A stretch of DNA of 64,000 nt from Oculina patagonica (GCF_052425735.1 NC_135765.1:3038001-3102000), one strand, 5' to 3'. Numbered from the stretch's first letter, positions 467 to 51,636 are shown. The notes: a model not told the origin generated them from the letters alone. A program made the numbers and translations.

Positions 467-527
467 CTCCACGATGAATAAAGAAAACCACAATGATCAA
501 GAGAAATTGGAAATAGCCGACAGCCAT
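467..527 (-). CDS. Ly6/three-finger array copy 0: signal-peptide exon 1 (exon 2 would lie left of the window)
   Basis: ATG at 527; 61-nt exon MAVGYFQFLLIIVVFFIHRG+G ending at a GTATGT donor; same length and phase as the other five first exons. Confidence 0.75.
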
Positions 528-630
528 TTTCACTGCTTGCTCTGGGCACTTCACAAAAGATAAAAGCGTACACGAAGACAATCCGAGCAAGGTCACGCGA
601 TATATTTCTATCACGCGATGGGACACGTCT

Positions 631-640
631 CCATATAAGG
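631..640. promoter_or_regulatory. CArG box upstream of copy 0
   Basis: CCATATAAGG matches CC(A/T)6GG; 104 bp from ATG; positionally conserved in all six first exons. Confidence 0.6.
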
Positions 641-1199
641 TATGGGTGTGTGGAAAAGCGATACCAATTAAAAGGATGGGGTTGACCGATAATGCACGCA
701 TAATTAAAGGAGCTAGTCACGGAGATTTCGGCGACTTTTGGTCTAAACTGTGCTGAAATTAGTAGTAGGCAACTTAACCGATGAAATCAATCAGTCAATC
801 AATTTATTAATGTCATGGCGCGGGATGAGAGTTTTGAAGGTCGGAGTAAACCACGAGAGAGACGTCCTAGGGCATGAGGGTGAATCATCTCTTCTAAAAT
901 CTATCAATATCTTGAGGCTAAAAAGCTTAGAATTTTAACTGATAGCTGAGGAATGGGCCCAATTTTCTGATAGCTGAAAATCGAGCACCCTCTCTTCCAT
1001 TTTCAGATATTTCCTTGTAATGAAAATTGCGTTTGTAAGAAAATGTAATCATGTTTCGTTTAGTTCATCAATGAAAATAAAACCTACAACTTGCTTTTTA
1101 CTATTTGTCCTGTACGACACGAAAAGTAAAGTATGATTTTGAAACATGTTCTTAAAACCCTAGGACAATGTAGCATCGGGCGATACTATATCGGGTTAA

Positions 1200-1752
1200 A
1201 GTTGTATGCGATTTTTGCATGACGCGGTGTCGCTCTGTTGATGCTACTGCCCTGCTCTGCCTGCTGATGTGCCGTGGGTTGTTTGTTCCTGAGTTTATAA
1301 TACCGCTGCAGTTGTCGCCAGAACAGCAGTTTTCTTCGAAGGTGAAAGTCCACCACGGAGGCCAAGGGCAACTGAATGTGGCACATCTTCTATGGCGAGT
1401 CTACAGCCTTCATATGCATTCGGAGAGCTACACCTTTTGTAGCAGTAGTTTCCATTAGATCGCCTGAAGTGCAATTCATCCTACCCCGATTAGACATGTT
1501 GATGATTTCGATGGGCATGCAGTTTTTGTCCTCTTTGAGTTGCAGTCATCCCAGGAATCTTCGCTTGTTCATTTGTAACAGCTCAGGCAATCTAGAGGAA
1601 ACGACGAATCGGTATTAAAACCTGGATCAACTCGTCAAGCTACCAGGCGAACACGGTTTATCTCAGGGAGCGAACGCGGAAACATGAACGACTACCTGGA
1701 GAGTACGCCCCCAGAATGCATCGACTTGTCTTGGTCAGACTTGCTCACCTCC
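1200..1752 (-). pseudogene. Ly6/three-finger array copy 1, pseudogene
   Basis: Acceptor ctctag|AT at 1591 as in paralogs, then DCLSCYK*TSEDSWDDCNS. TGA replaces Cys2 at 1569-1571, followed by several frameshifts. Only GGAG|GTGAG of exon 1 survives (about 1744-1752) next to a TIR element. Confidence 0.85.
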
Positions 1753-1755
1753 CAC

Positions 1756-2180
1756 CCCGGGGGGGTACTCCCTATAATGGCCTATACGGGGAGGCTCCGC
1801 CCGAAAGGGGTACCTTTTTCAGGCTTCAGGTATATAAAAGGGTAGGGATTTCACAATATTAGGTATATGAAAGGGTATAGAAATCTGATATTTAGGTTTT
1901 TCAAAGGGCCTTTAATTAAAAAATTTCGAACAGATGCAATTCAAGCTAATTCGTGGCTGTAATATTTCAACTTATTAAGCGCTACATGAAAATGACAAGA
2001 AAACGTCTTGATCTAAGTCTATGCCATGTCTTTCAGGTATATGAAAGGGGAACCTTTTTTAAGTGAAAGGTATACGAAAGGGGTACAATTTCTGTCAAAA
2101 ATGGTATATAAAAGGGTAAGGGGTTAGAGCTCGGGGCGGAGCCTCCCCGTACAAATCTTCTTTGAGTACCCCCCCCCGGG
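1756..2180. mobile_element. Non-autonomous TIR element at the site of the lost exon 1 of copy 1
   Basis: Inverted termini CCCGGGGGGGTACTC / GAGTACCCCCCCCCGGG; internal AAAGGG(G)TA repeats; no ORF. Confidence 0.7.
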
Positions 2181-2744
2181 CCCCCCACCCCGCACGGAAC
2201 GGGAAGCGGGAGGTTCAGACCCCCTTTCCACCCCCTAAAATCAGTCAGTCTGTCATCACTCAATTAATAAATCAATTAATCAATCATTTTATTTGTCGTA
2301 AACAAACTAATGACAGGAAAAGTGTTCCTCTACAATATATATATAATATAATGCTTATTCGGCGCAAATTAACATATAAATATGATCAAATGCGCCTTAC
2401 ATCAAATTAATTAAAAACCTAACAATTTACAATAGAATATATAACATTCCTAGAATAAAAAGTAAAAACTTAAGATTAAAATTAAAACTAAATCTAAAAC
2501 TAATATTCGTGAGAAGTCATGCTAAGAGAGGCTCTAGCTGTAACAAGCAAATGTTCTTTTAAACAAGTACGTCTTAATTGCTCATTTAAAAAGTTCAACA
2601 ATTCATATACCGCTGTTATTAAAGTATTTTGCTAGTTTATATCATAACTACAACAAAATAGATATAAAAGTGATTATATAGTTTCCTTGTTATACATTGA
2701 TCGCACACTGACGTACAGCATAGCATCTCATCCTCCAGCAAGAT

Positions 2745-4753
2745 TCAATGCATAACAGCTATAGCCCAGAGGGTCAGCGCCATGCATATTCCCAGCATCG
2801 CTTTGCTGATGCTGTGCGATGATCCAGAGTTGCAATTGTCTCCAGAACAGCAGGTTTCTACGTCGGAGTAACTCCACGACACAGACGGCGACTTCGGGCA
2901 TGAAGGAGAGTCTCCTGAGGCGGTTTCACAGTCTTTTTCTGGGGCGCTACACCTCTTGTAGTAGACAGTTTTCTCGATATTGCCTGCGGGGCATGACAGC
3001 GTTCCTTCAAGACACTGTAATGATCCCAATGAACATTTCATTGTTGTCATTTTTGAGTTGCAGTCATCCCAGGAATCTTGGCTTGTACATGTGTAGCAGC
3101 TCAGGCAATCTAGAGACGACGAAATCAATATTTAAACCTGGATCAACGTACAAAGTAATACAAACCCGGTGTCCTAGCGGATTTGGACCCCACCCCCAGC
3201 AGATATATGGACCCCCCGGTCCAAATCCGCCATGCGTTTTATATGCATATTCGCTACTCTCTCCTCCGCAGAGGCCTCTTTCGTGTTTCGTATGGGCTGG
3301 GAAATTGGGAGAGGTGAAAAGTAAGCGCGCGGAGCCTGGGGAGAAGGAGCCTCTGCGGAGGAGAGAGTATTTGCTAGCAGATTCCGACCCCCCTACGCGA
3401 AATTGGACCCCCAACAAAAGTAATCATACTTAACTTTCCTACACTTTCAGTTTGAGTCATCAACGAAAAAAAAGCAAAGCTTTTTTAATGTCATTGCGAA
3501 TATTTCATGGACTTTGAAAAAATGAAATAGACAACGTACGCCCAGGTGTAAACACGGTTGAAAATCCTTCAGCATACAATATAAAAAAATAAATAAATGA
3601 AGATCTGTAAATAAAATGTAAAATGTAGATAAAATGTACAGCATGCGCATCACAATTATGTAATTCTCAACATCCTGTAGCAACGTTTTCCAAACGAGAA
3701 TCAAGTGTGATCAGTTGTTGACCCAAGTGAAAGCGCAGAATCAAATATGCATTTGTCTTGATCTTTAGTAACGAATTTGGTGTTGTGAATCGAGGGAAAG
3801 TTGAAAAAAAAGTGTAAATTCTGAACTCAAAGAGTGCCATTTAACCGAAATTAGTTTTATCTGTCGAATGGAAATTATTCCTTTGAGCAACAGCGTAATA
3901 TTAGAAATTTTCGTAGGAATTTTTATGCTAATTCACGCATCAACAAATTTAATTGCAATTTGGTGGCCAAAGACTGTTGAATTCCCTGCAAAAATGTACG
4001 CGGTAAATTTCTAAGAGCTTGGACATTAAAATAAAATAGCTTTCAGGACGGCAAGCCTTGATTATTCTGTAAAAGTAACATTTTTTCAATCTTTTGAGCT
4101 ACATGGTTTTTCCACGCCGTGGCACGCTTCAATGATGCTGTCTCAACTCGGGTAAAACAACTAGAAGGGCTGTGAACTCTGCATGTAAAGGCGGGCTATG
4201 TTTCAGCCCTGCAAGCCGTGTAACTCGGTTAGCCAGGGCACCCTCCCTCCATGTAAACAGGCCCTAACTCTCAGTTTTAACCCGTTTGTCAGGCGATAGA
4301 CCAGTCTCGTTCCCAGAGCCTGCGTTCCCCTTGACCAGCGGTCGGGAATCCGTGGCGCAGACCAGAAGGATCGCGGCCTCTGGGGACGAGATTGGCGATA
4401 GACGAGAATTCTCGCTCAGCTCTGCGCATGGCACCACTGACGTAGCCATCGTTTAGTCTTCGTTTGGCCGACTTCGAATGATAGTCGATGAGAATTCAAC
4501 CCTTGTCATATCAATCTCATTAGGCAAGGGCTTTAGAAAGCGAACTCGGTCGAGCTTCCAGGCGAAATCGGTTAAACTGGGGAAATGGGGGTGTGAACAC
4601 ACACAATTCCCTCGCGTGATACGTTCTAGGACCTCTCATAAAGCAACAGTGAAGCAACAATCGAGCTCGCAACGCTCGCAATCACTAAATACCTTCTCGA
4701 TGAATGAAGAGAACCACAATGATCAAGAGAAAATGGAAATAACTGACAGTCAT
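2745..4753 (-). CDS. Ly6/uPAR (three-finger) GPI-anchored protein, copy 2
   Basis: Exon 1 4753-4693 (MTVSYFHFLLIIVVLFIHRE), phase-1 intron, exon 2 3109-2745 (DCLSCYTC...KRC...CCSGDNCN, then small-residue omega region and hydrophobic tail MLGICMALTLWAIAVMH). LxCYxC start and CCxxDxCN end are LU-domain hallmarks. Confidence 0.85.
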
Positions 4754-4852
4754 TTTCACTGCTTGTTTTGAACTCTTCACAAAAGCTAAAAGCGTGCACG
4801 AAGACAATCCCGGTAATATTTTTATCACGCGATCGGATTAATTAACACGTCC

Positions 4853-4862
4853 CCATATAAGG
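4853..4862. promoter_or_regulatory. CArG box upstream of copy 2
   Basis: CCATATAAGG, 100 bp from ATG. Confidence 0.6.
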
Positions 4863-4960
4863 TATGGGTGGGTGAAAATTGATACCAACCCATAATACAC
4901 CTTGCTTATCCGCCAAAATATTTACATAAGCATTGCTTTCAATTTCTCTTGGGACGATTG

Positions 4961-6695
4961 CAGAGATTTCAACCCTCCCATTTTCGGTGTTCCTTTCCGG
5001 CCTCCCGTTTTTCCTCAATATTCTCCCGTTTTTTGTAGCTTTCCTTTAGCAAAGTAAGATAGTGTTTTCTCTGCTACACTAGCCATTTTTGCACGATTCT
5101 TCATCGGTTTTCTATTGTATCTTGGCCAATCATCTTGGGCTTCCTAGCATCAGTCCGTGGTTTTTGGGCGGCGTTGACAAAACCTGGATCGGATCGGATC
5201 GGATCGCGGATCGGATCGCGGATCGGATCACGGATCGGATCACGGATCGGATCACGGACCGGATCACGGATCGGATCACGAAAAATAAAAAAATTAAAAA
5301 TAAGAAAAAAAAATAAAAAATAAAAAATAAAATACAATAAAATAAAATAAATAAATAAATAAATAAATAAGCATAAACAGAATAAAACAAAAAGTAGTAC
5401 TTTATTATGACAGGACGACATTTAACATTTAACTACGCCATGAACGAAACTTTTTTATTCAAGATCTGTTTTCTTATTGTGTTAGTTTAATTACATTTCT
5501 CAACTCATCTGAATAAAACAAACCAAGCTTTGAATATTTGAAAAAGATCTCATCTTTGTAGAAAATGTCATCGACTGTTTTTTTATTTAACGAGAGGATT
5601 AAGGACAATAACAAATTCTGAACGATGACTCAACGCAACTAGAGAGTAAAAAAGGAACTTGTGTCTATTTCATGCGCATACAAGCAAGAGTAAAAGACGC
5701 GTTCTCTAAATCTGAAGACAATCTCTTATTTTGTCATACAATTTTTTTTATATTTTTAATAAAAATAACAATGATAATAATATGTTCGCTTTAATTATCG
5801 ATATTTTATTCGCTTTTATAGTTCTGCATAATTCGCTGTCACTTCTAGGTTTGAAAATCCTAATCGATTCAAGTTTGAGTAGTTTAACGTGTTTAATCAA
5901 TACGAATAAACCTATTTGATTTCTTAGGTTATGATAATTTTCTAAATACCAAAACGTGATTTGTACTTAAGCAACGTACACGTGCCAGAACATGCGACTG
6001 ACACATGCTTGCAACGATTTGCATTTTGTTTTGCAAGCTGGAAAATGTTTCTCGTAGGGAAATTTCCAGGCCCTAATCCCTTTTCCTTTGATTCCAGATC
6101 GATTTGATTACTCCTCGTAAACAGCTATTGCTTGGCTTAATTCAGCTAACCAAAACAATTAATGTTTTTTTACTTTATTTTCTTCATNNNNNNNNNNNNN
6201 NNNNNNNNNNNNNNNNNNNNNNNNNNNNNNNNNNNNNNNNNNNNNNNNNNNNNNNNNNNNNNNNNNNNNNNNNNNNNNNNNNNNNNNNNNNNNNNNNNNN
6301 NNNNNNNNNNNNNNNNNNNNNNNNNNNNNNNNNNNNNNNNNNNNNNNNNNNNNNNNNNTGATCCGATCCGCGATCCGATCCGCGATCCGATCCGCGATCC
6401 GATCCGTGATCCGATCCGTGATCCGATCCGCGATCCGATCCGATCCGATCCAGGTTTTGTCAACGCCGGTTTTCGGGCGCTGTAATGCGGTGGATTGCCT
6501 CGACTTCGGGGTCTTGCTTCATTTTGTATGGTTTTTAGTTGGTAAATTTCCATTGACTATGATCTCAAAACGCAGGAAATGGCATCTAAGAGGCCTATAT
6601 TTTTAATATTTTCCCATGGTGCATGCCGCTGGACCCCCCTAGAGGCTCGCGACCAAAATTTCCCGTTTTTTCATCTCAGTGGATTGGAATCTCTG
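4961..6695. mobile_element. CAG...CTG TIR element inserted in the 4889-6783 MITE
   Basis: Termini CAGAGATTTCAACC / GGATTGGAATCTCTG; CGATTG duplicated on both sides. Confidence 0.65.
5170..6467. mobile_element. Foldback/Mutator-like element with TIRs built of 12-bp tandem repeats
   Basis: TIR GGCGTTGACAAAACCTGGATC followed by (GGATCRCGGATC)n on both ends, inverted; flanking direct repeat GGTTTTYGGGC (5159-5169, 6468-6478); N-gap at 6188-6358. Confidence 0.75.
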
Positions 6696-6784
6696 CGATT
6701 GTCCGTCATTGTAAGTCCCAAGAGAAATTGAAAACAATGCTTATGCAAAAAAAAAATAAGGGTTAAACAAGATGTATTGTGGGA

Positions 6785-7545
6785 CAGGGACGGCGGAGTC
6801 GGGGGGGCTGGGGGGCTTTAGCCTCCCCCCCCCAGTTTTGAGGAGGATTACATTTTATTTTGTTTTAGTATATGGTACGGATAAAAAAATTTAAAAAAAG
6901 GAGAACTAGAAAACGAATTATAGCTAATTATTATTTTTAGTTTTTTAGGTATCAAATTTGTAGTTACCGTTATTGAACGTTATTGCCATTCCAGATGCAT
7001 GTTTTAGCAGGGGATCGTTTCTCAAAGCATTGTTGACTTAATAGCAAACTACTTCTGTTAATGTTATTTCGATTCTTGTACAGTAGTTATTCGAGAAAAT
7101 GCATAAGAGTATTTGCCGGATGAAACTAGTGTTTAAATTGTTATTGCTTGATTAAGTCACAAGAATTAACGAAGCTACAACTTTATACAAACCTCGTCGG
7201 AAAAGTTTCGCTTTTACGTAGTTTTAAAATTTTCTCAGCGTGTGCTTGCTTCCCACAGACCGGAAGCGTGTGTCAAAAATCCGCAGGTTAGCGTAGAAGA
7301 CCGTAAGGCCGAGAAATAACCTCCAAAACATAGCTGTAAGCACTAAAAGTACCTTTTATTTCACGCTTTATCCGGGCTAATTATTTCAAGAAGTATCTCG
7401 TGGAGAATGCTGCAAACACGATTTCCAAGCTTCTACATTTCAAAATTTTCTCCTCTCCCAGGCCCCCCCAACAAACTCGCGCCTTCGGCGCTCGCTTTCA
7501 ACCCCCCCCTCCCCCCCCACTTCAAAATACACTCCGCCGTCCCCG
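6785..7545. mobile_element. Non-autonomous TIR element
   Basis: Termini CAGGGACGGCGGAGT / ACTCCGCCGTCCCCG; TGGGA duplicated on both flanks. Confidence 0.65.
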
Positions 7546-7915
7546 TGGGAACGGTAAAAACAGCGTATTGTGCAGGCATAATTAAATGATAAAAAAATGA
7601 CATAAAACTAACATAAATATTGATGGTTCGGTGCGGTTAAAAGCCCTCTCCTTCCCTTCTTTCGACTTTTTTTTGCTTGTTTACAAGCAAAAAGAAGGAG
7701 AATAGCAGTTATGTGGGGTAATCTGGAACCGGAAATGGAACCGGAAGGAACCACATTCTTGTTAACTCTCAAGGGACTGTTTTAATTTCTCAAGGGAATA
7801 CTTTCCGCTGTGGGTGATTAAAGCGCGTGACTTGTAAAGTGTCACTCTATAGTTGTGCTTCAGCACTTCCGTTCTTGTAGAAAAAACGTGACTTGTCAAA
7901 TTTACAAACGTTATA

Positions 7916-8091
7916 CAGTGGAACCCCGATATAGCGATATGCCAAGGGGGCAGTAAAATTATATCGTTATATCGAGGAATCGTTATATCGGGGTTCTGTC
8001 CCATACATTTTACTTTTGCCGGGACATAACATATTCATCGTTATATCGGGAATATCGTTATATCGAAGATCGTTATATCGGGGTTCCACTG
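7916..8091. mobile_element. Tc1/mariner-pogo-type MITE
   Basis: TA|CAGTGGAACCCCGATATA ... TATATCGGGGTTCCACTG|TA with internal ATCGTTATATCG repeats. Confidence 0.8.
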
Positions 8092-8117
8092 TATAACAAT
8101 CAAAAACGTGAGTAGCC

Positions 8118-8163
8118 TAGCCTGTTCCAGGCGTTCGGTTAGCCGAACGCCTGGAACAGGCTA
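8118..8163. mobile_element. 46-bp hairpin mini-element with 9-bp TSD
   Basis: TAGCCTGTTCCAGGCGTTCGG-ttag-CCGAACGCCTGGAACAGGCTA flanked by TGAGTAGCC on both sides. Confidence 0.75.
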
Positions 8164-9460
8164 TGAGTAGCCCAAATCTTACGTCACATAACCAATTAAG
8201 AATGTAAGGGGTTCAGCGCTCGAAGGCAGCGAAGTTTAAAACGATTAAGAACGCAATTTGTACTGGTACAAGTCTTTAGGCGCTAATATTAATTTAACCT
8301 AAAACGATTAACAACGCAAATTTGTACTGGAACAAATCTTTCACACACTAAAACGTTGCTAATAGTTAACCAAAGGGAACTCATTTCGTGACAATTGATT
8401 ATTTCTGCTGAGTTGCACAATTTAGAATTGCAACATCATTAAATGTGTTAAGTGATATTTACAAGTGTTTTTGTAGCCTGTTGTGAAATTACTTCCGGTC
8501 GAAGCAGTAAACGCTAAAACAATGTGCTAAACGTTTTTGCTTCTGTTCAGAAGTTAATGCATCGCCATTAGAAAAATAAACAGCAACTGTTTTACTGGAA
8601 ATGTAGTCGTTAGAAATGGCATGTGTAGCCGTAAGGTAAAGAATAACGCGAGGAGAAGCGGCTTTTGGTAATATCCAAACGAAAATTTACTTCTCCGTTG
8701 TGGGGTTAAGATTGCGTGACGAGACAAAAGGTAACTCTGTCGTGCGTAACCTTTATCGGGAACCCTGCATTAAGCCGAGTAGAAATCTTTCTAACTCGAA
8801 AGAAAACAACTATTTCGATTAAAGGCAAACGTCAAAGTTTACTATTTTTAACCAAGCCAAAGTATATGAGTCGTAAAGCACCCAGCCGTCGCGACTGACA
8901 AATACAGCATTTCCTCCGCGAAAATAAAAAAAATGCTTGAACTGAAAGACGTTTGAATTCTTCCATGATATGTTCGAACAACAATGCCCAGGATAAACCT
9001 TCTACTCATACTAACTTCATGCAAAAAAGTCGATATCTCGAAGAGATCTTTTTTTCTCCGTTTACCGTCGATTGCGTTTCCTAATTTGGGTCGGTCGGTT
9101 GGCTGAGACCCAGCCCCTGGATCACGCTATCAAGTTTGTTGCATCGTGACATGATATTTAGTTGTCAATCATCAGTCAATCAATCAATCAATCAATCAAT
9201 CAGTTAGTCAATCAATCGTTTTATTTGTCCTTATCAAACTAATTACAGGATAGGGTTTTCTCTACAAGAACTCAACTAATTACAAGAAAAGGTTTTCTCT
9301 ACAACAACTCAAATACCACTGTAAGATCTGTAATAAAAGTCTTTTCCAAGTTTATAAAATAACTACATGAAAAATGAATACACTGAAGTGATCGTAATTT
9401 CCTTGTTACACGCTGATCACACACTGACGTACAGCATAGCATCTCATCCTCCAGCAAGAC

Positions 9461-10825
9461 TCAATGCATAACAGCTAGAGCCCAGAGGGTCAGCGCCATA
9501 CATATTCCTAGCACTGCTCTGTTGATGCTGTGTGATGATCCAGAGTTGCAATAATCTCCAGAACAGCAGTCTTCTGAGGCGATGTAATCCCACCTCACAG
9601 ACGTCTTCGGGCATGGGGGCCTATCTCCTGTGGCGGTGTCACAGTCTTTATTTGGGGCGCTACACCTCTTGTAGTAAATAGTTTTCTTGACATCGCCTGC
9701 GGTGCACGTCAGTGTACCCGTAAGGCATTCCGTTGAATTTGAGGGGCACGTAATTTTTGTCATCTTAGAGCTGCAGTCATCCTCGGAATCTTCGCTTGTA
9801 CATTTGTAACAGCTCAGGGAATCTAGAGGAACCGGACAAAATCAATATTTAACCCTGGATCAACAAAGGCGTACACGCAAAATTAAATCTACTTGATAAA
9901 TAAGCCTGTTTCAGCTCGGGGATTGAAAAATTATTGCTTCAGAAAGTTCTTTCGTCGAAGCGATAAAAGAATTAGATAAACTTCGGTAATTTCTTGACAT
10001 TCTCTGTCTTTGCTATTCCTTGAACGCACGATTTTGGAGTTAAAATATTAAAAATATCTTTGTTTACTGCTATAAATTTCGCTGAAATCTCAGCCTTGTC
10101 AGGCATGTTCCGCCATCTTGGATTCAAGATGGCGGAACATGCCTGACGAGGGCTGAGATTTCAGCGAAATTTATAGCAGTAAACAAATTTAAAGATATTT
10201 TTAATATTTTAACTCCAAAATCGTGCGTTCAAAGAATAGCAAAGACAGAGAATGTAAGAAATTACCGAAGTTTTTGAAAAATTATTCCGACACAAGAGAA
10301 ACTTCGAATTACGCCATGCCTCGAGTCCGCGCTCGCTTTATATAGGGTTTTTCTTGTAGGTCGTCTAATCGGAGTCGAGTGCGCAGATTTCTCACTCATT
10401 CGCATCGACTCTCGCCGTGCATATTGCGATTTTGTCAAATTTATACTCTTGACATCCTGATTTGGCCGACCTGGTATAAACTGATAAGAGTTCAACTCTT
10501 GTCAACTCTTGTTAACGCTCTTGTTAAATTTTTGTAAACTCTGTACAACTCTAGATCCTGCCCCAGGCATTTTCAATCTCGTTTGGCCTGGGCTTTTAAA
10601 AGGGAGTGAATTTAGTCGAGCTACCAGGTGAGAGCGAGCAAACGTCGGGTAAGGGAAGATGTGAATACGAACAGTTTTCTCGAGATGGTATCCTTCGTTT
10701 CAATCTAGGACCTCTATAAAGATAAAGAAACGATCGACATCCCAACATTTGCACTCCTACATACCTCCTCGAGGAATGAAGAGGACCACAATGAACAAGA
10801 GAAAATGGAAATAACTGACAGCCAT
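9461..10825 (-). CDS. Ly6/uPAR (three-finger) GPI-anchored protein, copy 3
   Basis: Exon 1 10825-10765 (MAVSYFHFLLFIVVLFIPRG, GTATGT donor); exon 2 9822-9461 (DSLSCYKCTSEDSEDDC...CCSGDYCNSGSSHSINRAVLGICMALTLWALAVMH); in frame, 12 Cys. Confidence 0.9.
9978..10273. repeat. ~295-bp near-perfect palindrome in the intron of copy 3
   Basis: ~145-bp arms centred on CCGCCATCTTG-gatt-CAAGATGGCGG; insertion bounded by direct repeat TTGAAAAATTATT (9923-9935, 10274-10286); absent from the homologous intron of copy 4. Confidence 0.9.
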
Positions 10826-10937
10826 TTTCACCGAGCTCTTCACTGCTTGAACGTTTCACAAAAGATAAAAGCGTGCACGAAGACAGTTCTTAAAAGTTCA
10901 TGCGAAATATCAGGCAACCGGATTAATTAACACCTCC

Positions 10938-10947
10938 CCATATTAGG
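10938..10947. promoter_or_regulatory. CArG box upstream of copy 3
   Basis: CCATATTAGG, 113 bp from ATG. Confidence 0.6.
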
Positions 10948-12096
10948 TATGTATATAAGTGACCTGTCGAAAAGTGCAAGGACCACTTGAACAAACACCC
11001 GGGGGGGGGGGGGCGGGAACAAACAGCAGCGAAGTAAAGACGGATCTTGGCATAGAAAATCATATTCCAATCATATATTATCTTTTTTATAAGCATCATT
11101 TCAAATATTGTACCCGTCTATTTCCAATTTTACTTACCTTTTTTTGCGGTCCCTGAAGGAGGTTAGCGAGTTTAATTTTGTCAATCCGAAATATTGGGCA
11201 ATAAAACTAGCCCCTTTTGCTAACCGATCAGTCTTGCATTTGTTTTTATTTCTGATCTGATAGGGGCTGGCACGTTATTCCTGCATAATTTGGGGCATAA
11301 TACCATAGTTGGCAGTCAGATTTTGCAGCAAAAATGAATATCAAATTGAAATAATAAAAATATAGTAATAATTGATGATTCTGTGCGGTAAACATGTTAT
11401 ATATCTCTTGACCCTTGTTTTTGTTAGTACTACAACACATGTAAGTTCGATCTCAGTGCGTTTTCTTCTGGGAAGACGGAAGGTGGCCATTTTACTGATG
11501 GGACAGCATTTTTCCGGCATAATTCGGAGCATACTTTAGTGCTGCCGAGCATAATTTGGAGCATAAGTACTCCTTTTTCGAGGATGACGCCAAGAAGACT
11601 CAATGGTAACAATGTGTCAATTCCTAATACCAATATCACCTGACAAGAGCAACGATGTGTTAAGATACATGTGCCTATGTTTTTTTTTCAATAAAAATTC
11701 GAGGGGATCAGTCTTTCTCTCTTGCGCAGTCTCCTCTAACCATACAACAAATTGATTTTCGCAGGTTAGATTATCGCTGTAAAACAAATTATAAAAAGGC
11801 GGGGCAGCTTTATAGTGAGAACTATTACTAGTAAGGTATAAAAGTGCCAACACAAGACATTCAAACACTTAAAACGTTTCGGGCTTCGCCGTTCATCAGT
11901 CAAGTAAAATCTAGCCTGTTCTACGACTGTTATCAAATGATTTTTGTACATATCTTCACGATCCTTTCTTGGTTTTCCTAGCTAACCTAAGTACAAGTAA
12001 AACAGAAAATAAAATTGATCATTTGAAGTTCTATTGTTATTTCATCAGTGACTGAAAGCATTTTAGCCCAGTCTTCCAGCAGAAGTCAAGCAGGTC

Positions 12097-13548
12097 TTAA
12101 TGAATAAAAACTGGAAGCCAGAGGATCAGTGTCATGCTCATTCCCAGCATCACTCGGTTGCTTCTCAGTGTGGTGCCGTGTGAAGGTCCAGGGTTAGGAT
12201 TGCTGCATTGGTCTCCGGCACAGTTGCAATAGTCTTCACCGCAGCAGTCTGTCGAGTCAACTTGCAACCACCCACCCGACGGAGGGCATTTGGGCGAATC
12301 TGCTTTTGAGGTTTCACAGTATTCAGTATTTGGGGCGCTACACCTCTTGTAGTAGGTAGTTATCATGACATTGCCTGAAGTGCAGTTCTTCATTCCCGTG
12401 AGACAGTTGAATGACCCCGATGGACATGTAATTTTTGTCGCATTTGAGTTGCAGTCATCCCAGGAATCTTCGCTTGTACATTTGTAACAGCTCAGGGAAT
12501 CTAGAGAAAACGACAAAATCAATATCAAACCCTGAATCAACGAAAGCGTGCAGGCAAAATTTTAGATTTAAAAATCTACTCAGTTGATAAATTAGTCTGT
12601 TCCGGCTCGGAGATTGAGCTTGGAAAAAATTTTTCGACAGGAAGAGAAACTTCGATTTACGCCATGCCTCGCTCGCTATATATAGGGTTCATTGTAGGTC
12701 GTCTAATCGGAGTCGAATGCGCAAAGCTCTCGCACACTCATCGACTCTCGCCGCGCATTACACTCTTTTATTTCTATATTTCTAGAAGAATATATTTTAT
12801 AAGAATAGAGAGGCTGAAATTTGAAGAAGATTTTAAGAATAAACCCGAGGCTGAGATTTTGAAAAGAACATAATTTTGTGTAAATGTGTAAATACAATAC
12901 AATTATATGTTTTCAACTAAACCGTTAAAATTCTTCTTTTCTCTTAATGACAAAACTAGCTAAATAGCAACGAAAGCAGTACTAGCCGTACGCTTGATGC
13001 TAACAACGTTTCTTCAAGAAGTTATATGTACACTTGTTATTGATACCCCAATACATTCTAAAACGGAAATACGTTATAATCTAAGAATATTCAAAAGAAT
13101 ATTTCAGCCTAAAATCGGCAGAAAAAATAAGAATATTCAGCCTGAGCCGAAAAAATAATATTCTTATAGAAAAAAGAGTGTACGCAATTTTGTCAACTTT
13201 GTACTCTTGGCATCCTGATACAACTCTTGTCAACTCTTGTTATCTGTCTTGTTCAACTTTTGTTAACTCTGTTCAACTCTTTCCTCAGGCATTTTCAATC
13301 TCGTTTGGCCTGAGCTTTTTAAAGGGAGTGAATTCATGTCGAGCTACAAGATATGATGAGAGCGAGCAAACGTCGGGTAAGGAAGGGTGTCAACACGAAC
13401 GATTCCCTCGAGATGGTGTCTTTCGTTTCAATCTAGGACCTCTCATAAAGAAACGATTGACATCCCAACACTCGCAATCCTACATACCTACTCGAGGAAT
13501 GAAGAGGACCACAGTGATCAAGAGAAAATGGAAATAACTGACAGCCAT
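12097..13548 (-). CDS. Ly6/uPAR (three-finger) GPI-anchored protein, copy 4
   Basis: Exon 1 13548-13488 (MAVSYFHFLLITVVLFIPRV, GTATGT donor); exon 2 12500-12097 (DSLSCYKC...CCGEDYCNCAGDQCSN... hydrophobic tail); 14 Cys. Confidence 0.9.
12761..13180. mobile_element. TA-flanked MITE in the copy 4 intron
   Basis: TA|CACTCTTTT ... AAAAGAGTG|TA; absent from the homologous position in the copy 3 intron. Confidence 0.7.
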
Positions 13549-13660
13549 TTGCACTGAGCTCTTCACTGCTTGAACGTTTCACAAAAGATAAAAGCGTGCA
13601 CGAAGACAGTCCTTAAAAGTTCATTCGAAATATCAGGCAACCGGATTCATTAACACCTCC

Positions 13661-13670
13661 CCATATTAGG
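13661..13670. promoter_or_regulatory. CArG box upstream of copy 4
   Basis: CCATATTAGG, 113 bp from ATG. Confidence 0.6.
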
Positions 13671-14005
13671 TATGTATATAAGTGACCTCTCGAAAAGTGC
13701 AAGGACCACTTGAACAAACACCCGGGGGGGGGGGGGGCGGGAACAAACAGCAGCGAAGTGAAGACGGATCTTGGCGTAGAAAATCGTATTCCAATCATAT
13801 TACATCTTTTTTATAAGCATCTTTTCAAATCTCGTTGCCGTTTATTTCCATTTTTACTTACCTTTTTTTTTGCAGTCCCTGAAGAAGGTTAGTTTTATCT
13901 ATTCGAAATATTGGGCAATAAAATTAGCCCTTTTAGCTGTCCGATCAGCCTTGCATTTGGTTTAATGTATATGAGTGGGTGGATATGCGATACCAATCTG
14001 ACAGG

Positions 14006-14659
14006 TACAGAGCCCAGTTAGGGCCACTTATTTTCCCTCGTCAACTTTCCCTTTCACGACTTTTATTTTTTATGAAACGACTTCTGAATTGCTTTAGCAC
14101 AACTCTATTTTCTTGTGGCACGACATCACGACTTCAACTTTTTTTTAGCAAGATTTCAACTTTTTGGCATGACTTTTAGTTTTTGGCACGTCTTCAACTT
14201 TTTGACACGATTTCAATTTTTTTTTTGGTACGACTTCAACTTTTATGCACGACTCATTATTTCTCGGCTCATTTTGTGAGCCGCTGGGAACTTTCACTCC
14301 CGAAGGCAGCCAAAATGGCGGCTACAATGCTCGCACAGTTACGGATGTTACATTTTTTTTTGCAATTCTTACATTGAACAGCGGTCATGCAGAACGTGAC
14401 GAACTAAGCGAACGTCACTTCACACAAAAGACTTCACTTTGTATCACTTGCTTGTCAATATCAATAATAATTGTTACATTGTTGCTGATTATTAATTTTT
14501 TCTTTGAAAAACGGCAATCATGCCAAAAGAGTTGAAGTCGTGCCATAAAACGAAAAGTCGTGCCAAAAAAAAAAGAGTTTAGAACTCGTTTTATAGAAAA
14601 ATAAGTCGTGAAAGGGAAATTTGACGAGGAAGAATGGATGGCCCTAACTGGGCCCCGTA
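14006..14659. mobile_element. TIR element with GCACGACTTCAACTTTT subterminal repeats
   Basis: TACAGAGCCCAGTTAGGGCC / GGCCCTAACTGGGCCCCGTA termini; interrupts the block otherwise colinear with 11250-11770. Confidence 0.75.
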
Positions 14660-16784
14660 GATAGGGGCTGGCACGTTATGCCTGCATCATTTGAGGCATA
14701 ATACTATAGTTGGCAGTCAGATTTTGCAGCAAAAATAAATATCAAATGGAAATAATAAAAATATCGTACAAAATTGATGGCTCGGTGCGGTTAACATGTT
14801 TTATTTCTCTTGACTTTGTTGTTTTGTGGATAAAATTTGTGAAATTTCGATACTGCAATTGGCTGCTGCTGTTGTTGTAACTACAACACTGTAGGCTCGA
14901 TTTCAATGCGTTTTCTTTTATTTCCTGTGTATTTGGGAAGACGGAAAGTGGCCATTTTACTGATGGGACAGCAATTTTCCGGCATAATTCGGAGCATACT
15001 TCAGTGCTGCCGAGCATAATTTGGAGCGTAAGTACTCCTTTTTCGAGGGTGACGCTAAGGAGACTCAATTTCAACAATGTGTCAATTCCTAATACCAATA
15101 TCAGTTAACAAGAGCAACGATGTATTAAAATACATGTGCCTAAGTACTTTTTCAATAAAAATTCGAAGGGATCAGTCTTTCTCTTTTGCGCAGTCTTCTC
15201 TAACCATACAACAAATTGATTTTCGCGGGTTAGAAAGGATTAAATACTCTCGCCTTTTCGAGAATTGCAAGGCCTTAATTCCACTGCTGATTTACCTGTT
15301 TAATGTTTTCAACCGTTGGTGAGCGACAATACTCCTACTTGTGAGCGCAAAACAGTCAACACTTTGCTCGTCTCGCTGCAAAACGATTTCTCGCGGATTC
15401 CGGACCGGCATGTCCTGATATAAAAAAGTTGACGCTTGACAAGAAATGTATTTCCTTTTCACTGGCTCCGCTTAGGTTGCATTTATTATTCAGATATTTC
15501 TTCACCATTTTCGTTGTAGCTTATATTTAGCTTATTCCAGTGCTGAAACTGTAACTTCAGTTCTGACTCAGTATTCGCTTTTATCTCTGTATTAAATTGA
15601 TGTAATAAACTCGATCTCTGTTGTTTGCGTCTTTACTTATGATAGAAATGTCAGTTTCTATTCGGCTGAGCGAAGCGAAAGAGAATTGAACGCATAGCAG
15701 AATATGAGACTAGCTAGCAAGGTGTTTGATGTAACGCTGTCTCGAGTATTTGATATCATCTCCTCAATCGAAACAAAAGTTTTTTTTCCAGGGGTTTTAG
15801 GGAACAAGGAAACATGGTCATAAAACAATTGGGAACAAGGGAACAAAAGCTGTGTTTCCGATATTTTAGGGAACAAGGATGTCAAAATCGACAAAATACT
15901 TTTAGGGAACAAGGAAACACAAGGGAAATTTTTTGGGGGAACAAGGGAACGTGCTCCCCCCCCCTTCCCCCGAGAGGGGCTTTATCCTATCTTGACCACG
16001 GTTGTGATTCCCTTTTCTTGGTCTTTCTTAAACTCAATGAATTATTATTGAGTCAATCAATCAATCAATCAGTCAGTCAGTCAGTTTCATTGCTTTCCCC
16101 TCTATAACGCAATTGAAAGTAAGCTATTTTTTTCTTCAAAACTCACTCGTATTGTCAGGTTTAAAAGTGATTTATATCATGAAAAAGTAATTTAGCCTTC
16201 GTTAAAATGGAGAACTACGCACACTCTTTACTGTAGGGGTATTGGGTACGCACTTTTTTGGCATAATTTTGAAAAATGAGCATAATTTCAGCGTTTTTGA
16301 ATGATCACGAACACCACTAGGAGCAGAAAATACCAGTTTTTCTAGCACGATCGGGAAGAGCCTAAAACTGGGCAAGCTTGCAAGAAACTCTTGCAAAAGG
16401 CGCATTCCATTTTCGTTATTGTACGGACGAGACTTGAAAATGCTGAGCAGTCGATAGCTTTACGTGTGTAAGGTGATTGCTGAAGCTAGTTGTGAGTGAA
16501 ATTGTAGGTTCCTGCGGTTCTTTGGAGGTAAGAAATACAAGTTTACGTCTTTTGAGGCCGAGAATCGTGGGCCCATACTGTGCTCTCAATCTCGTTGGCC
16601 CGAGCTTTAGGGAGCGAACTCAGTCAATCTACGAGGCCAACTTAGCTGAACTTGGGAGCTTACGCGAAAGGTAGGGCGTGAACGCGGACGGTTCCTTCGA
16701 GACAGTACGCCCATCAATTCTAATAATTATTAGGACCTAAAATACAACGACGATAAACCTCCCAACACTTGTACCCCTGCTTAC

Positions 16785-16845
16785 CTCCTCTAGGAATGAA
16801 GATAAACACGGTGATCAAGGAAAAACAGAAATAACTGACAGCCAT
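16785..16845 (-). CDS. Orphan Ly6-array signal-peptide exon (copy 5); no cognate exon 2 seen
   Basis: Intact 61-nt exon MAVSYFCFSLITVFIFIPRG+G with GTAAGC donor, CArG box and conserved intron start; no LSCY..CCxxDxCN exon between 13548 and 16785. Confidence 0.6.
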
Positions 16846-16952
16846 TTTTACTGCTTGCGCTGAACTCTTCACAAGGACAAAATCGCACTTGACGAAACGT
16901 GGACTATCAGAGTGGAATGTAAGGTCACGTGATCAGATTGCTAACACGGTCT

Positions 16953-16962
16953 CCATATTAGG
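16953..16962. promoter_or_regulatory. CArG box upstream of orphan exon (copy 5)
   Basis: CCATATTAGG, 108 bp from ATG; GTCACGTGA E-box at 16924-16932. Confidence 0.6.
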
Positions 16963-18635
16963 TAAGGGCGGGTGAATAGCGATATAGCCTTCGAACTTTG
17001 ACGGATTTCCGGTTGTTGTTTCATTTTTTTGCGGTGCGAAACAACAACTGAAAATCTGTCTGTGTTCGCTGGCTAAATGAACGGCGGAGAAATCTATGCA
17101 CTAACCGCGAGCCAGAGCGGGAGAAGGCTGGGCAGCCTTCTCTCGCCTTGACAAATTCACGGAATTTGATTTAAGGTGGCTAGTAATAGTTTAAATATTC
17201 TCGTCTTTGGCATTCTCTTGCTGCTACACATGTAATGTCGAGGTTTAACTTTCAGAACATCCTTGTATAGCTTTTACTAATAAACAACCTGGAGTCACTC
17301 TGACGTCAAAATTCGTTGCCACGGCAACTACAAAAGTGGTCAAAGATACCTTATTTTTGACTGTTTAAGGCTAATTACTCTAAAACTAGACGGTAAAAGT
17401 TTTTGTTTTTCATATATTTTTGTCTAAAGGACAAAAGAAACGATCTGACAATTTTTTAAAAAATTCTGTCAGAAATGTTCAGAGCCACCTTAAATTTAAG
17501 CAAAAAGAACGTAGCTCCGAATCCATTTGATAAATTTCTTTAAAAAATTGCAAAAATGTTTATTTTGGGGTTAGCCTCGAAAGGTCCAAAATAGTGTATC
17601 TTTAACCTCATATGACGTTGCCATGGAAACAGATTTCGACCTCACCATGACCTCAAATTGTTCATCGGTAAATCTTAAAGATTTTCCTTAACGTTATTGG
17701 TATAGCTGTGATGGAATACCAAAGACAGGTTAAACCTTTTGAAAATACAGCGTGCGTTCATGCCTCGGGGTATGCATGATGCTTTGCGGCCTCTTGGCTT
17801 AAATTCTTGGGTTTTGCCTCGATTACTGTCATCTTTGCCGGCGTTCCGGTGGAGGAAGATTTTGTCGCCCCACCCTCCTTCCCTAGTGCCGGTTGACGGT
17901 GCTACCCTTGTTGCCCGCTGTATTAACTAGATGCCACAGTAGTCGTGGACTCCTCCAACAACTTAGACTACCGTGATGTGGTAATGGGGTATGCAGTGAG
18001 GATAAATTACAATTTCCGCTTGAGTTTAGGAGAAAGAAAGAGGAAATTAAACTTCTGGTAGAAAGGTAGGCAAATGTTAAATAAACACAATACAAATGCT
18101 AATTTGTGACAGAGAATAAATCAAGGCTCGTTCGGATTCATTCTCGTCCCCAAAGCCGCTTTTCCCTTTCAGGTGACTGAGCCTTGGGCACACATGTTTC
18201 GCCGAATTACCTAGATTTTTAACAAAGAGAATTTAAAACTAGTCAATCCAATCAACCGTAGTAAAATCCCTTACAACAAAGGGATTTTAAAGCGGTCGAT
18301 TCAATTTGTCAAATTAAAATTTCCTCTGTTGAAGATCTAGCCATTCAAATCATGTGTCCCCAGAGCCACTTGTTCCTCGCCCCATAAACGTGCCAAAAAA
18401 GTTAGTTAACGACCAAACGTTTCGGGCTTCGCCTTTAATCAGTCAATGAAAATCTAGCCTGTCGAACAGGCACTAACGTATCTTGTACATATCTTCACGA
18501 TCCTTTCTTGGTTTTCCTAGCTAACCTAAGTTCAAGTTAAAAGAACATAAAAATTGATTATTTGAAGTTTCATTGTTATTTGATCAGTGACTAAAAGCAT
18601 TTCAGCCCAGTCATCCAGCAGGAGTCCAGCAAGAC

Positions 18636-20100
18636 TCAATATAGAAAAGCTAGGAGCCAGAGGATCAGTGTCATGCTCATTCCCAGCATCACTCGGTTAC
18701 TCCTCAGTGTGGTGCCGTGTGATGGTCCAGGGTTAGGATTGCTGCATTGGTCTCCAGCACAGTTGCAATAGTCTCCAGAGCAGCAGTCTTCTGAGTCAAA
18801 ATCCCACCACGCACCCGTCGGAGGGCATTTGGGCGAATCTTGTTTTGAGGTTTCACAGTCTTCAGTATTTGGAGCGCTACACCTCTTGTAGAAGGTAGTT
18901 ATCATGGTATTGCCTGAAGTGCAGTTCTTCATACCAGTAAGACAGGTGTATGTTCCTGATGGACATGTAATTTTTGTCGCATTTGAGTTGCAGTCATCCC
19001 AGGATTTTTCGCTTGTGCAATAGTAACAGCTCAGGGAATCTATATAAGAAACGACGAAATCAATGTTATATACCTTGATGAATTTAAGGAGGCTCACAAC
19101 GGTTTCCAGCACTTTCCAGCTCTTATACTTAGATGAGTCAGTACTACAAATCTTTAACAGTTGCTGCTACAATAATGATATCGAACAAATTTTCAATCAT
19201 GACTGAACAAGTTGTGGCATTTTCATGACATCACTGGTTGCCGTAACAACAGTATAACCTGTTAAACACACCCTTAATTTTCTCTTTAAGCGCTTAGAAC
19301 CCAAAAACGGGCCCGGTGACCCCATTTTTTATTATCGAGAAATGATCAACATGTTAACATACAACTTTTCACAAAATTAAAAAAAATTTCTCCAGAGCAG
19401 TTTCAGAACCACCTTAAATTTTCGGAAATTTAAGGTGGCCTTGAAACCGTTGTAAGCCTCCTTGTAAATCTGACAAGAAACTGTCAAAGGAGAGTAGGAA
19501 CTACTCAGTTCACAAGCTAGCCTGTTTCTGGCTCGCAGATTTGGCTGTGAAAGTTTGAAAAAAAAAAGAATTTCAGAATTTGATGGGTAGAAAGTTAGAT
19601 TTATATACGCTCCGCTTCGAGTCCGAGTTCGCTCCCCAAGCTCAATCGCTTTGTAGATCGTCCGTCTTTTTGAAGAGTTATTCTGCAGCTCACGCTCTTC
19701 GCTCTTGCTCATGCTCGCGTCGGCTTTTGTCATCTTCCGGTTCTCACTCCGAGCATTGCGTGACTTCTGACAACTCTCTTGTACCCTTGGCTGACCTTGA
19801 ATGATAGTCGATAAGAGTTCGACTCTTATGAATTCTAATGTACTATCAAAACCGTTTGGCCCGGGCTGTAAATAGGGAGCAAACTTTGTCAACCATGGCC
19901 AGCAGGCGAACACGGTTGATCTTAGGTAGCGAACACGAAAGTAAGGATGCGAACACGGACGACTACCTAGAGATGGAACGCCCCCACAATTCGGTCTAGG
20001 ACGATCGACTTGTCTTAGTGAGACTCGTCCCCTTCTTACCTCCTCGAGGAATGAAGAGAACCACGATGATCAACACAACATGGAAATAACTGACAGCCAT
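18636..20100 (-). CDS. Ly6/uPAR (three-finger) GPI-anchored protein, copy 6
   Basis: Exon 1 20100-20040 (MAVSYFHVVLIIVVLFIPRG, GTAAGA donor); exon 2 19039-18636 (DSLSCYYC...CCSGDYCNCAGDQCSN...MLGMSMTLILWLLAFLY); 14 Cys. Confidence 0.9.
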
Positions 20101-20209
20101 TTTCACTGCTTCAACTCTGCAGAGACAAAGACACAAGCGCGCTAGACGAATGTATAACGTCTGAGGTCGAGAAAGAGTTGGAGGATCACGCGACTAGATT
20201 TATACCTCC

Positions 20210-20219
20210 CCATATAAGG
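20210..20219. promoter_or_regulatory. CArG box upstream of copy 6
   Basis: CCATATAAGG, 110 bp from ATG; TATAAAT on the minus strand just downstream. Confidence 0.6.
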
Positions 20220-51136: not shown

Positions 51137-51636
51137 NNNNNNNNNNNNNNNNNNNNNNNNNNNNNNNNNNNNNNNNNNNNNNNNNNNNNNNNNNNNNNNN
51201 NNNNNNNNNNNNNNNNNNNNNNNNNNNNNNNNNNNNNNNNNNNNNNNNNNNNNNNNNNNNNNNNNNNNNNNNNNNNNNNNNNNNNNNNNNNNNNNNNNNN
51301 NNNNNNNNNNNNNNNNNNNNNNNNNNNNNNNNNNNNNNNNNNNNNNNNNNNNNNNNNNNNNNNNNNNNNNNNNNNNNNNNNNNNNNNNNNNNNNNNNNNN
51401 NNNNNNNNNNNNNNNNNNNNNNNNNNNNNNNNNNNNNNNNNNNNNNNNNNNNNNNNNNNNNNNNNNNNNNNNNNNNNNNNNNNNNNNNNNNNNNNNNNNN
51501 NNNNNNNNNNNNNNNNNNNNNNNNNNNNNNNNNNNNNNNNNNNNNNNNNNNNNNNNNNNNNNNNNNNNNNNNNNNNNNNNNNNNNNNNNNNNNNNNNNNN
51601 NNNNNNNNNNNNNNNNNNNNNNNNNNNNNNNNNNNN
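51137..51636. other. 500-N scaffold gap
   Basis: Run of N separating the two duplicated blocks. Confidence 1.

Follow-up and report, generated by a model that had tools for sequence, protein, structure and literature searches.

Within the window analysed here, a 64,000-nt stretch of the Oculina patagonica assembly (C8:3038001-3102000, with window positions counted from its first letter), positions 467-20219 very probably belong to the right arm of a cluster that extends over ~75 kb (C8:2983510-3058106) and is made up of paralogous genes with two exons, which encode three-finger proteins of the Ly6/uPAR (LU) family. The whole cluster comprises 12 intact genes, three LU pseudogenes and two orphan first exons, arranged in two inverted arms. 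The intact paralogs are numbered g01 to g12 (our own labels), and the window holds g09 to g12 complete. These genes are real, well supported, already present in public annotation and members of a known family, and they do not constitute a new kind of system. Their interest, which is moderate, lies in the turnover of the array, a mosaic gene, a subclade devoid of an anchor signal and a hint of interchangeable first exons.

Gene structure and content of the window

A combined pattern and BLAST scan located six signal exons on the minus strand, each exactly 61 nt long, starting at the ATG and ending in a G directly before GT. Five LU exons accompany them, each preceded by a polypyrimidine tract and AG and opening with ATT(G/C)CCTGAGCTG. 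Four of the five are intact, while the fifth reaches a stop after six codons and accumulates further stops and frameshifts by ~1170. In every pair, an Asp codon spans the joint, its G coming from the end of exon 1 and its AT from the start of exon 2, so the intron is in phase 1; introns across the cluster share this phase and measure 0.7-2.6 kb. The window therefore contains four complete genes, exon 1 of a fifth (g08, with its LU exon outside the window, 2.2 kb to the left at C8:3035835-3035450), one orphan first exon and one LU pseudo-exon (Table 1).

An earlier note on this DNA, made from the sequence, had described at least seven units with both exons each. The minus-strand placement and the two-exon structure stand, but only four genes in the window are complete. 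The 61-nt signal exon and phase-1 intron that it proposed are borne out by the exon coordinates, the GT/AG ends and the Asp codon at the joint, and every peptide string that it quoted, among them SVSWSYSDVET, SVRWDYIASED, GGWLQVDSTD and GAWWDFDSED of the third finger, is present. Its placement of the whole LU domain in a single exon agrees both with the splice seen in contigs and with gene models identical to NCBI proteins, as described below.

Table 1. Features of the LU gene cluster within the window
Feature	Position	Strand	Remarks
g08 exon 1	467..527	-	61 nt, MAVGYFQFLLIIVVFFIHRG + G; unused in public model G027149
g08 upstream element CCTTATATGG	631..640	-	113 nt 5' of g08 ATG
LU pseudogene exon	1170..1591	-	AG acceptor kept; 6 internal stops, frameshifts; no first exon upstream
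g09 exon 2	2745..3109	-	LU, GPI-type tail and stop; product 141 aa; Pfam UPAR_LY6 29.3 bits
g09 exon 1	4693..4753	-	MTVSYFHFLLIIVVLFIHRE + G; donor GTATTT
g09 upstream element CCTTATATGG	4853..4862	-	
Assembly gap	6188..6358	.	Intergenic, g09-g10
g10 exon 2	9461..9822	-	ACROYT_G027150, 140 aa; LU, GPI-type tail and stop; Pfam 36.1 bits; AlphaFold model; contig splice
g10 exon 1	10765..10825	-	Joint 9822->10765 in contigs of X3 and X5
g10 upstream element CCTAATATGG	10938..10947	-	
g11 exon 2	12097..12500	-	ACROYT_G027151, 154 aa; LU with extra C-terminal Cys pair, GPI-type tail; Pfam 20.8 bits (below cut-off)
g11 exon 1	13488..13548	-	g10/g01-like 5' half of mosaic
g11 upstream element CCTAATATGG	13661..13670	-	
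Orphan first exon	16785..16845	-	MAVSYFCFSLITVFIFIPRG + G; donor GTAAGC; no LU exon before next gene
Orphan exon upstream element CCTAATATGG	16953..16962	-	
g12 exon 2	18636..19039	-	ACROYT_G027152, 154 aa; Pfam 21.4 bits (below cut-off)
g12 exon 1	20040..20100	-	MAVSYFHVVLIIVVLFIPRG + G; donor GTAAGA
g12 upstream element CCTTATATGG	20210..20219	-	

Transcripts and public annotation

When spliced as predicted, g10, g11 and g12 yield proteins identical to NCBI models ACROYT_G027150, G027151 and G027152, respectively. Transcripts were sought among the contigs of four public runs over window positions 9400-13650; these runs are guessed to be RNA and are available as contigs, from which expression levels and transcript ends cannot be read. 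The spliced-transcript check that the earlier note had suggested came out in favour of the gene model: a minus-strand joint with GT..AG ends, spanning 942 skipped nt and coinciding exactly with the predicted junction of g10, is carried by one contig each in two runs from two studies (Table 1), the shorter side measuring 85-89 nt. A more abundant contig joins a first exon, differing at two to four positions from that of g10, to the start of a DCLSCYTC-type LU exon, and most likely derives from g01.

The public annotation of the left part of the window departs from our models. Model G027149/XP_078379266.1 joins the first exon of g09 to the LU exon of g08 and skips the intact LU exon of g09; the latter exon and the first exon of g08 appear in none of the public protein models retrieved. 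This may be a homology-driven annotation error or another instance of cross-gene splicing.

Very deep contig coverage (up to ~1,400) with many loose ends was also seen in three intronic and intergenic patches (9968-10109, 11672-11955 and 12808-13233), which probably represent transcribed interspersed repeats. The last of these lies within the intron of g11, in a segment that aligns to neither g10 nor g12.

Family membership and fold

By sequence and by fold, the proteins belong to the Ly6/uPAR three-finger family. Against the Pfam model UPAR_LY6 (PF00021, gathering score 24.8), g10 and g09 score above the threshold and g11 and g12 below it (E 4-5e-4 for the latter two; scores in Table 1). A profile built from 59 family sequences retrieved uPAR (1.6e-14) and CD59 (2.5e-7) from the PDB, together with CD177, C4.4A, LYPD6/6B, TEX101, PSCA, LYPD1 and SLURP1. 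The AlphaFold2 model of g10, computed with the 59-sequence alignment, has a mean predicted local distance difference test (pLDDT) score of 88.9, rising to 93-97 over residues 21-110. All Foldseek matches of this model in the PDB are three-finger proteins (best E 1.6e-3, with none at E<=0.001), and re-alignment with VIA gave a Z score of 9.0 to uPAR domain D3 (root-mean-square deviation 2.8 A over 81 residues) and 182 chains at Z>=5, with all 50 matches listed being three-finger proteins that cover model residues 22-117. A fold search of Swiss-Prot models aligned the precursor over its whole length with Ly6E, PSCA, Lynx1, Ly6D and Bouncer, each of which is laid out as a signal peptide, one LU domain and a GPI signal. 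Pfam, profile search, structural model and structural matches thus agree on the three-finger identity assigned in the earlier note.

The LSCxxC start, the 12 cysteines up to the CN and the CC-x4-CN motif are kept in all 12 intact paralogs. Two neighbouring models fall short of their cut-offs: the snake-toxin family PF00087 reaches 20.7 bits at best (cut-off 21.2), the window genes moreover keeping a hydrophobic tail, and the LYPD6-type family PF16975 reaches 7.9-12.7 bits (cut-off 31.5).

Precursor termini and anchor-less paralogs

The hydrophobic region of the signal peptide has a mean Kyte-Doolittle value of 2.8-3.4 over residues 6-17, with a helix predicted over residues 4-15, and on a rule-based reading the small residues at -3 and -1 (G-D-S/C) ahead of LSC provide a putative cleavage site. 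At the opposite end, nine of the 12 genes, including all four in the window, display a glycosylphosphatidylinositol (GPI)-type pattern by rule of thumb, consisting of S-G-S-S, a spacer of 7-12 aa and 18-21 hydrophobic residues. The C-terminal tail is under purifying selection, with a nonsynonymous-to-synonymous rate ratio (omega) of 0.29-0.61.

The other three genes (g04, g05 and g07, all outside the window) have no hydrophobic tail; a shared deletion of ~28 nt leaves them with the ending ...NRAVLV and all cysteines intact. They correspond to ACROYT_G027143, 144 and 148 (C8:3011031-3011356, 3014171-3014493 and 3032615-3032290), and their sequences indicate products that are probably secreted rather than GPI-anchored. 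The GPI anchoring put forward in the earlier note is accordingly suggested for the nine genes with the tail pattern and does not extend to the three paralogs that have lost it. The mammalian SLURP/Lynx split offers a comparison for this division between a tail-less subclade and putatively anchored members.

Upstream element and intergenic gap

Each of the cluster's 15 first exons, those of orphans and pseudogenes among them, has the sequence CCTWATATGG 104-122 nt 5' of its ATG, within flanks that diverge. Its letters make it a candidate match to the CArG consensus. Since transcript-like contigs reach at least 58 nt upstream of an ATG, the TATATGG core would be positioned ~25-50 nt before the start of transcription, and the element may simply be the TATA box of a core promoter.

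The assembly gap between g09 and g10 lies 1,435 nt upstream of the g09 first exon (4753) and 3,103 nt downstream of the g10 stop (9461). It crosses no exon or intron of any model, so the continuity of reading frames is not at issue, and the g09-g10 interval measures 4,708 nt where the corresponding one of the other arm measures 4,886 nt, which makes a large hidden segment unlikely. The gap is flanked on its left by a T-rich run and on its right by a 12-mer tandem repeat (GATCCGATCCGC, 6360-6451), a pairing that mirrors 5186-5393. The two sites (5186-5393 and 6170-6451, the second of which contains the gap) form an inverted pair of the 12-mer tandem repeat (~8 copies) beside an A/T-rich run, and may be the ends of a foldback-type element.

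Exon conservation, a mosaic gene and selection

Nucleotide identity, averaged over the 66 pairs of the 12 paralogs, is highest in exon 1 (90.7%, range 82-100%), followed by the first 60 nt of exon 2 (87.7%); it amounts to 75-85% in the 150 nt upstream of the ATG, 70-81% at the intron ends and 75-83% over the coding sequence (CDS) of exon 2. The contrast drawn in the earlier note between signal exon and variable mature exon is therefore real, exon 1 being the best conserved part, but the term 'near-invariant' is too strong for such a range. Exon 1 is low in both synonymous (dS 0.108) and nonsynonymous (dN 0.099) divergence in comparison with the mature part (dS 0.287, dN 0.232), which argues for conservation at the nucleotide level or homogenisation and not for protein-level selection on the signal peptide.

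Gene g11 is a recombinant mosaic of two other gene types. It matches g10/g01 at 85-99% identity in two stretches, one running from ~460 nt upstream of its ATG to ~330 nt into the intron, the other covering the final 100 nt of the intron together with the opening 75 nt of exon 2; from there onwards, the remainder of exon 2 and 250 nt past the exon are 83-96% identical to g12. Recombination of this kind is one visible cause of the likeness among first exons. Some direct constraint must also act, since the first exons of g12 and g10 are 84-85% identical even though their promoters and introns are no longer alignable.

Under the codon model GY+F3X4, with tests against omega = 1, omega is 0.88 for the whole CDS, 1.00 for the mature domain with its invariant cysteines and 1.34 without them (p 0.06). 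Finger III stands at 1.70-1.76 (p 0.023-0.036) and its tip at 2.2 (p 0.018). In sliding windows, the end of finger I and the first strand of finger II give 0.43-0.64, and the second strand of finger II through finger III gives 1.2-2.4. These p values are nominal, from a region picked after seeing the data, with gaps in the loop alignment and recombination in the array. The pattern fits a single diversifying binding face on a fixed scaffold, combined with a functional anchor signal, and diversifying selection is suggested. The diversifying pressure invoked in the earlier note is accordingly no more than suggestive, given the post hoc choice of region and recombination.

The most serious competing account is that the finger III rate and the conservation of exon 1 reflect relaxed constraint together with recombination or gene conversion, with no need for adaptive diversification or for selection on the signal peptide. 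We regard this as a substantial possibility, falling somewhat short of probable. A mature-domain omega indistinguishable from neutrality, the nominal and post hoc nature of the finger III tests, the low dS as well as dN of exon 1, the g10-type 5' half of the clearly recombinant g11 and the dispensability of copies evident from three LU pseudogenes can all be read in this way. Yet the genes are constrained and the excess of replacements is regional: all 12 cysteines persist in all 12 intact genes, omega is 0.3-0.4 in the tail and as low as in the sliding windows above for finger I and the first strand of finger II, and the identity of the g12 and g10 first exons outlasts that of their surroundings.

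The orphan exon and the question of interchangeable first exons

The orphan first exon retains its ATG, frame, GT donor and upstream element, and is probably still used. No LU remnant turned up in tblastn searches, at E<=1e-2 or 1e-3, either behind it (13623-16750) or in the corresponding place behind the twin exon of the other arm. In run X1, one contig has the LU exon of g10 joined, at the exact exon boundary, to 28 nt of orphan-exon type (one mismatch); in the whole genome, the orphan-type 30-mer is confined to the two orphan exons, and that run gives no coverage of the first exon that belongs to g10. The joint would reflect either a rearranged haplotype in the sampled individual or the use of the orphan as an alternative first exon across ~7 kb.

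One extension of the latter option, which we consider doubtful, is that the array operates as a combinatorial unit in which interchangeable first exons with their own promoters, orphans included, are spliced to the LU exons of downstream neighbours. Such an arrangement, the mirror image of that in the clustered protocadherin and UGT1A loci, would uncouple promoter choice from the choice of LU domain. It would also explain the nucleotide-level conservation of exon 1 and the first 60 nt of exon 2, the phase 1 shared by every junction, and the intact ATG, donor and promoter element of the orphan exon. The pointers to interchangeability are the orphan-g10 joint in X1 and the joint of g09 exon 1 to the g08 LU exon in G027149/XP_078379266.1; structural polymorphism between individuals and homology-driven annotation are simpler alternatives.

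Proposed mechanism and role

Ly6/uPAR proteins are versatile surface binders, among them receptor modulators, complement inhibitors and gamete-recognition factors. Each cnidarian genome encodes dozens of them.

In the scheme that we favour, each intact gene carries a promoter-proximal CCTWATATGG element of its own. Exon 1 supplies most of the predicted signal peptide, and exon 2 the 12-cysteine LU domain followed by a GPI-attachment-type signal. The precursor would enter the endoplasmic reticulum, where the signal peptide would be cut after GD(S/C) to leave the canonical LxCxxC start, and the hydrophobic tail would be exchanged for a GPI anchor near the S-G-S-S stretch. A three-finger domain of ~92 aa would then be displayed on the outer face of the cell membrane, whereas the paralogs that share the tail deletion would probably be secreted. 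By analogy with other LU proteins, the loops, mainly those of the second strand of finger II and of finger III, may bind a protein partner. The likeliest mode of action, on this analogy, is that of a lipid-anchored binder (soluble in three members) that engages an extracellular protein through its variable fingers. The more specific channel-modulator or recognition role envisaged in the earlier note finds no support in our analysis.

Several points weigh against this scheme. GPI anchoring and surface display are predictions from sequence rules, and partner binding through finger III is borrowed by analogy from other members of the LU family. Half of the four complete window genes lie under the Pfam gathering score, and their tie to the family runs through their 47-53% identity to g10. 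That the runs searched for transcripts are RNA is a guess, and they exist as contigs, with the spliced form seen for g10 only and probably also for a g01-like paralog; g11 has no contig coverage in the four runs (contigs over 9400-13650 only), which is not evidence of silence. Finally, a 500-N scaffold gap separates the two arms, and their relative orientation depends on the join across it.

A reading that we judge unlikely is that the proteins serve mainly as secreted components of the matrix or granules of skeleton-forming calicoblast cells, and not as receptors or modulators on the surface. The precedent is Pdcyst-rich of Pocillopora damicornis (PMC2728513). This protein of ~147 aa combines a signal peptide, a uPAR/Ly6/CD59 domain and a GPI signal (the last predicted); immunolabelling placed it in granules of the calicoblastic ectoderm, and heat stress lowered it 100-fold. 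We found localisation and expression data for no other coral LU protein. The three paralogs devoid of an anchor signal would suit such a role, and the fold search matches LU-like parts of the Acropora millepora skeletal matrix proteins B3EWZ7 and B3EX01, but at fold level only (17-18% identity). Nor is Pdcyst-rich the same gene, a possibility that was considered and rejected: its published antigen peptide is absent from the Pocillopora members (P0015 and P0016, the Pocillopora ortholog thus included) and from the whole set of 128 proteins fetched, which marks it as a different LU gene, from another branch of the family.

Protection of coral cells against their own or foreign pore-forming proteins, in the manner of CD59, appears less likely still. 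The family profile does match CD59, the model aligns to it (Z 6.5) and the predicted layout, with a signal peptide ahead of one LU domain and a GPI signal behind it, agrees with that of CD59, but CD59 is one of many LU matches that are as good or better (uPAR, C4.4A, LYPD6B and toxins), and a shared fold says nothing about function.

Array anatomy and origin

Searched against the genome, the g10 LU exon gives 14 matches within C8:2983510-3057037, as well as more distant LU clusters on other contigs. The left arm of the cluster lies on the plus strand, the right one on the minus strand. The order of one arm mirrors that of the other, and individual blocks share 80-95% identity; a 500-N gap separates the arms (C8:3015469-3015968), and a second 500-N gap lies at C8:2985757-2986256. 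The LU pseudo-exon of the window has a twin in the other arm at C8:3005681-3006015, as does the orphan exon, so both states are older than the inverted duplication. One pseudogene of the cluster shows an acceptor changed from AG to AA along with an in-frame TGA, and one orphan exon has its ATG changed to CTG. A 5.9-kb block containing a BTG-family gene and an LU gene is repeated in direct orientation.

The BTG family offers a landmark for the origin of the array. Two copies of a BTG-family gene outside the window (C8:2980125-2980676 and C8:3025561-3026109) share 86-88% protein identity with the Orbicella BTG, and each stands beside a minus-strand LU gene. In the 70-kb locus of Orbicella faveolata there is one LU exon, convergent with BTG, and the loci fetched from Stylophora (ortholog XP_022801468.1) and Pocillopora likewise hold one LU exon each, with the same two-exon structure. 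Gene g06 sits beside BTG in Oculina in the arrangement found in Orbicella, and is the likely positional ortholog; adjacency to BTG marks the ancestral position of the array. From a single gene at this position, the array would probably have grown by tandem and inverted segmental duplication, with continuing turnover through pseudogenisation, orphaning of exons and recombination between members. Recombination, possibly together with shared splicing or regulatory needs, would keep the first exon alike across copies.

The birth-and-death turnover proposed in the earlier note is evident in the pseudogenes, orphan exons, inverted segmental duplication and recombinant gene, and its lineage expansion is apparent relative to the single LU exon at the loci fetched from Orbicella, Stylophora and Pocillopora. 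In a maximum-likelihood tree, the 12 Oculina genes do not form one clade, and the approximately unbiased test does not reject a single clade (p 0.147); expansion in the Oculina lineage is thus likely, with its timing relative to the Oculina-Orbicella split not fixed.

The least likely of the alternatives is an assembly error in which two haplotypes were placed head to head across a 500-N gap, so that the inverted arms, and with them the extent of the array, would be artefacts. The two such gaps and the mirror-order colinearity of the arms are what this would produce. The arms, however, are just 80-95% identical, differ by whole genes (g11 has no counterpart) and in rearranged pairings of exon 1 and exon 2 blocks, and the 5.9-kb BTG and LU block is repeated directly, not inversely; differences between alleles would, in our expectation, be far smaller. 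The arms as haplotype copies were rejected on these grounds of identity, gene content and the direct repeat.

In the public model at the Orbicella locus (MZGG01000310.1), 50 kb separate the signal exon from the LU exon downstream of it, and the 'intron' encloses ELO and Ets genes. The same 141-aa CDS runs without a break in a 2.7-kb Logan contig, and the Orbicella locus holds 3,845 N; the 50-kb intron may be a quirk of annotation or assembly.

Elsewhere in the window, three intronless open reading frames of 342-416 aa (36309-37559 on the plus strand, 39573-40601 and 51850-52878 on the minus strand) resemble, when inspected by eye, seven-helix class-A receptors with DRF/DRY-like and NPxxY motifs. 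The two copies of 342 aa are nearly identical and flank a 500-N gap (51137-51636).

Relation to known systems and implications

The closest likeness in architecture is to the vertebrate single-LU proteins Ly6E, PSCA, Lynx1, CD59 and Bouncer, with which the coral proteins share a predicted signal peptide, one LU domain, a putative GPI-type signal, the LxCxxC start, the CCxxxxCN end and a structural match over the whole length. The vertebrate Ly6 genes typically have three exons that split the LU domain, and occur in clusters where GPI-anchored and secreted members are found together (PMC4839075). The coral array resembles those clusters (human 8q24, mouse chr15) in its probable mix of the two kinds of member. 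It differs from them in its two-exon genes with the entire mature protein in one exon, a contrast that the earlier note had correctly drawn, as well as in having 12 cysteines in place of 8-10 and an identity of ~20%.

The best profile and structure matches are uPAR D3, C4.4A (LYPD3) and LYPD6/LYPD6B (VIA Z 9.0, 8.4 and 7.6). However, uPAR and C4.4A are multi-domain proteins, unlike the coral single-LU proteins, and for LYPD6 the Pfam scores reported above stay far from the cut-off. Snake three-finger toxins share the fold (Z 6.4-7.9 to muscarinic toxins, erabutoxin and alpha-neurotoxins) but are without the GPI-type tail that the coral proteins keep; the PF00087 scores stay below the cut-off, and there is no sign of venom expression.

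Among cnidarians, a survey of three-finger proteins reports an average of ~43 LU-domain genes per genome, many with signal and GPI signals (Acta Naturae 2026, PMC13719153), and the Oculina array forms part of that repertoire. A word search of that survey met neither 'tandem' nor 'exon', so array anatomy and turnover seem not to be treated in it. Our literature search returned no coral-specific study of this Ly6/uPAR subfamily and no paper mentioning its Orbicella, Stylophora or Oculina accessions.

For genome annotation, the array flags an unannotated intact LU exon accompanied by an unused first exon, and an 'orphan' first exon that is possibly functional. More broadly, it illustrates how the family has grown in a coral, from an ancestor beside BTG through inverted and tandem duplication to one recombined gene, with loss of the anchor in one subclade and replacement changes concentrated in the C-terminal fingers, and it supplies concrete candidates for studies of expression and binding.

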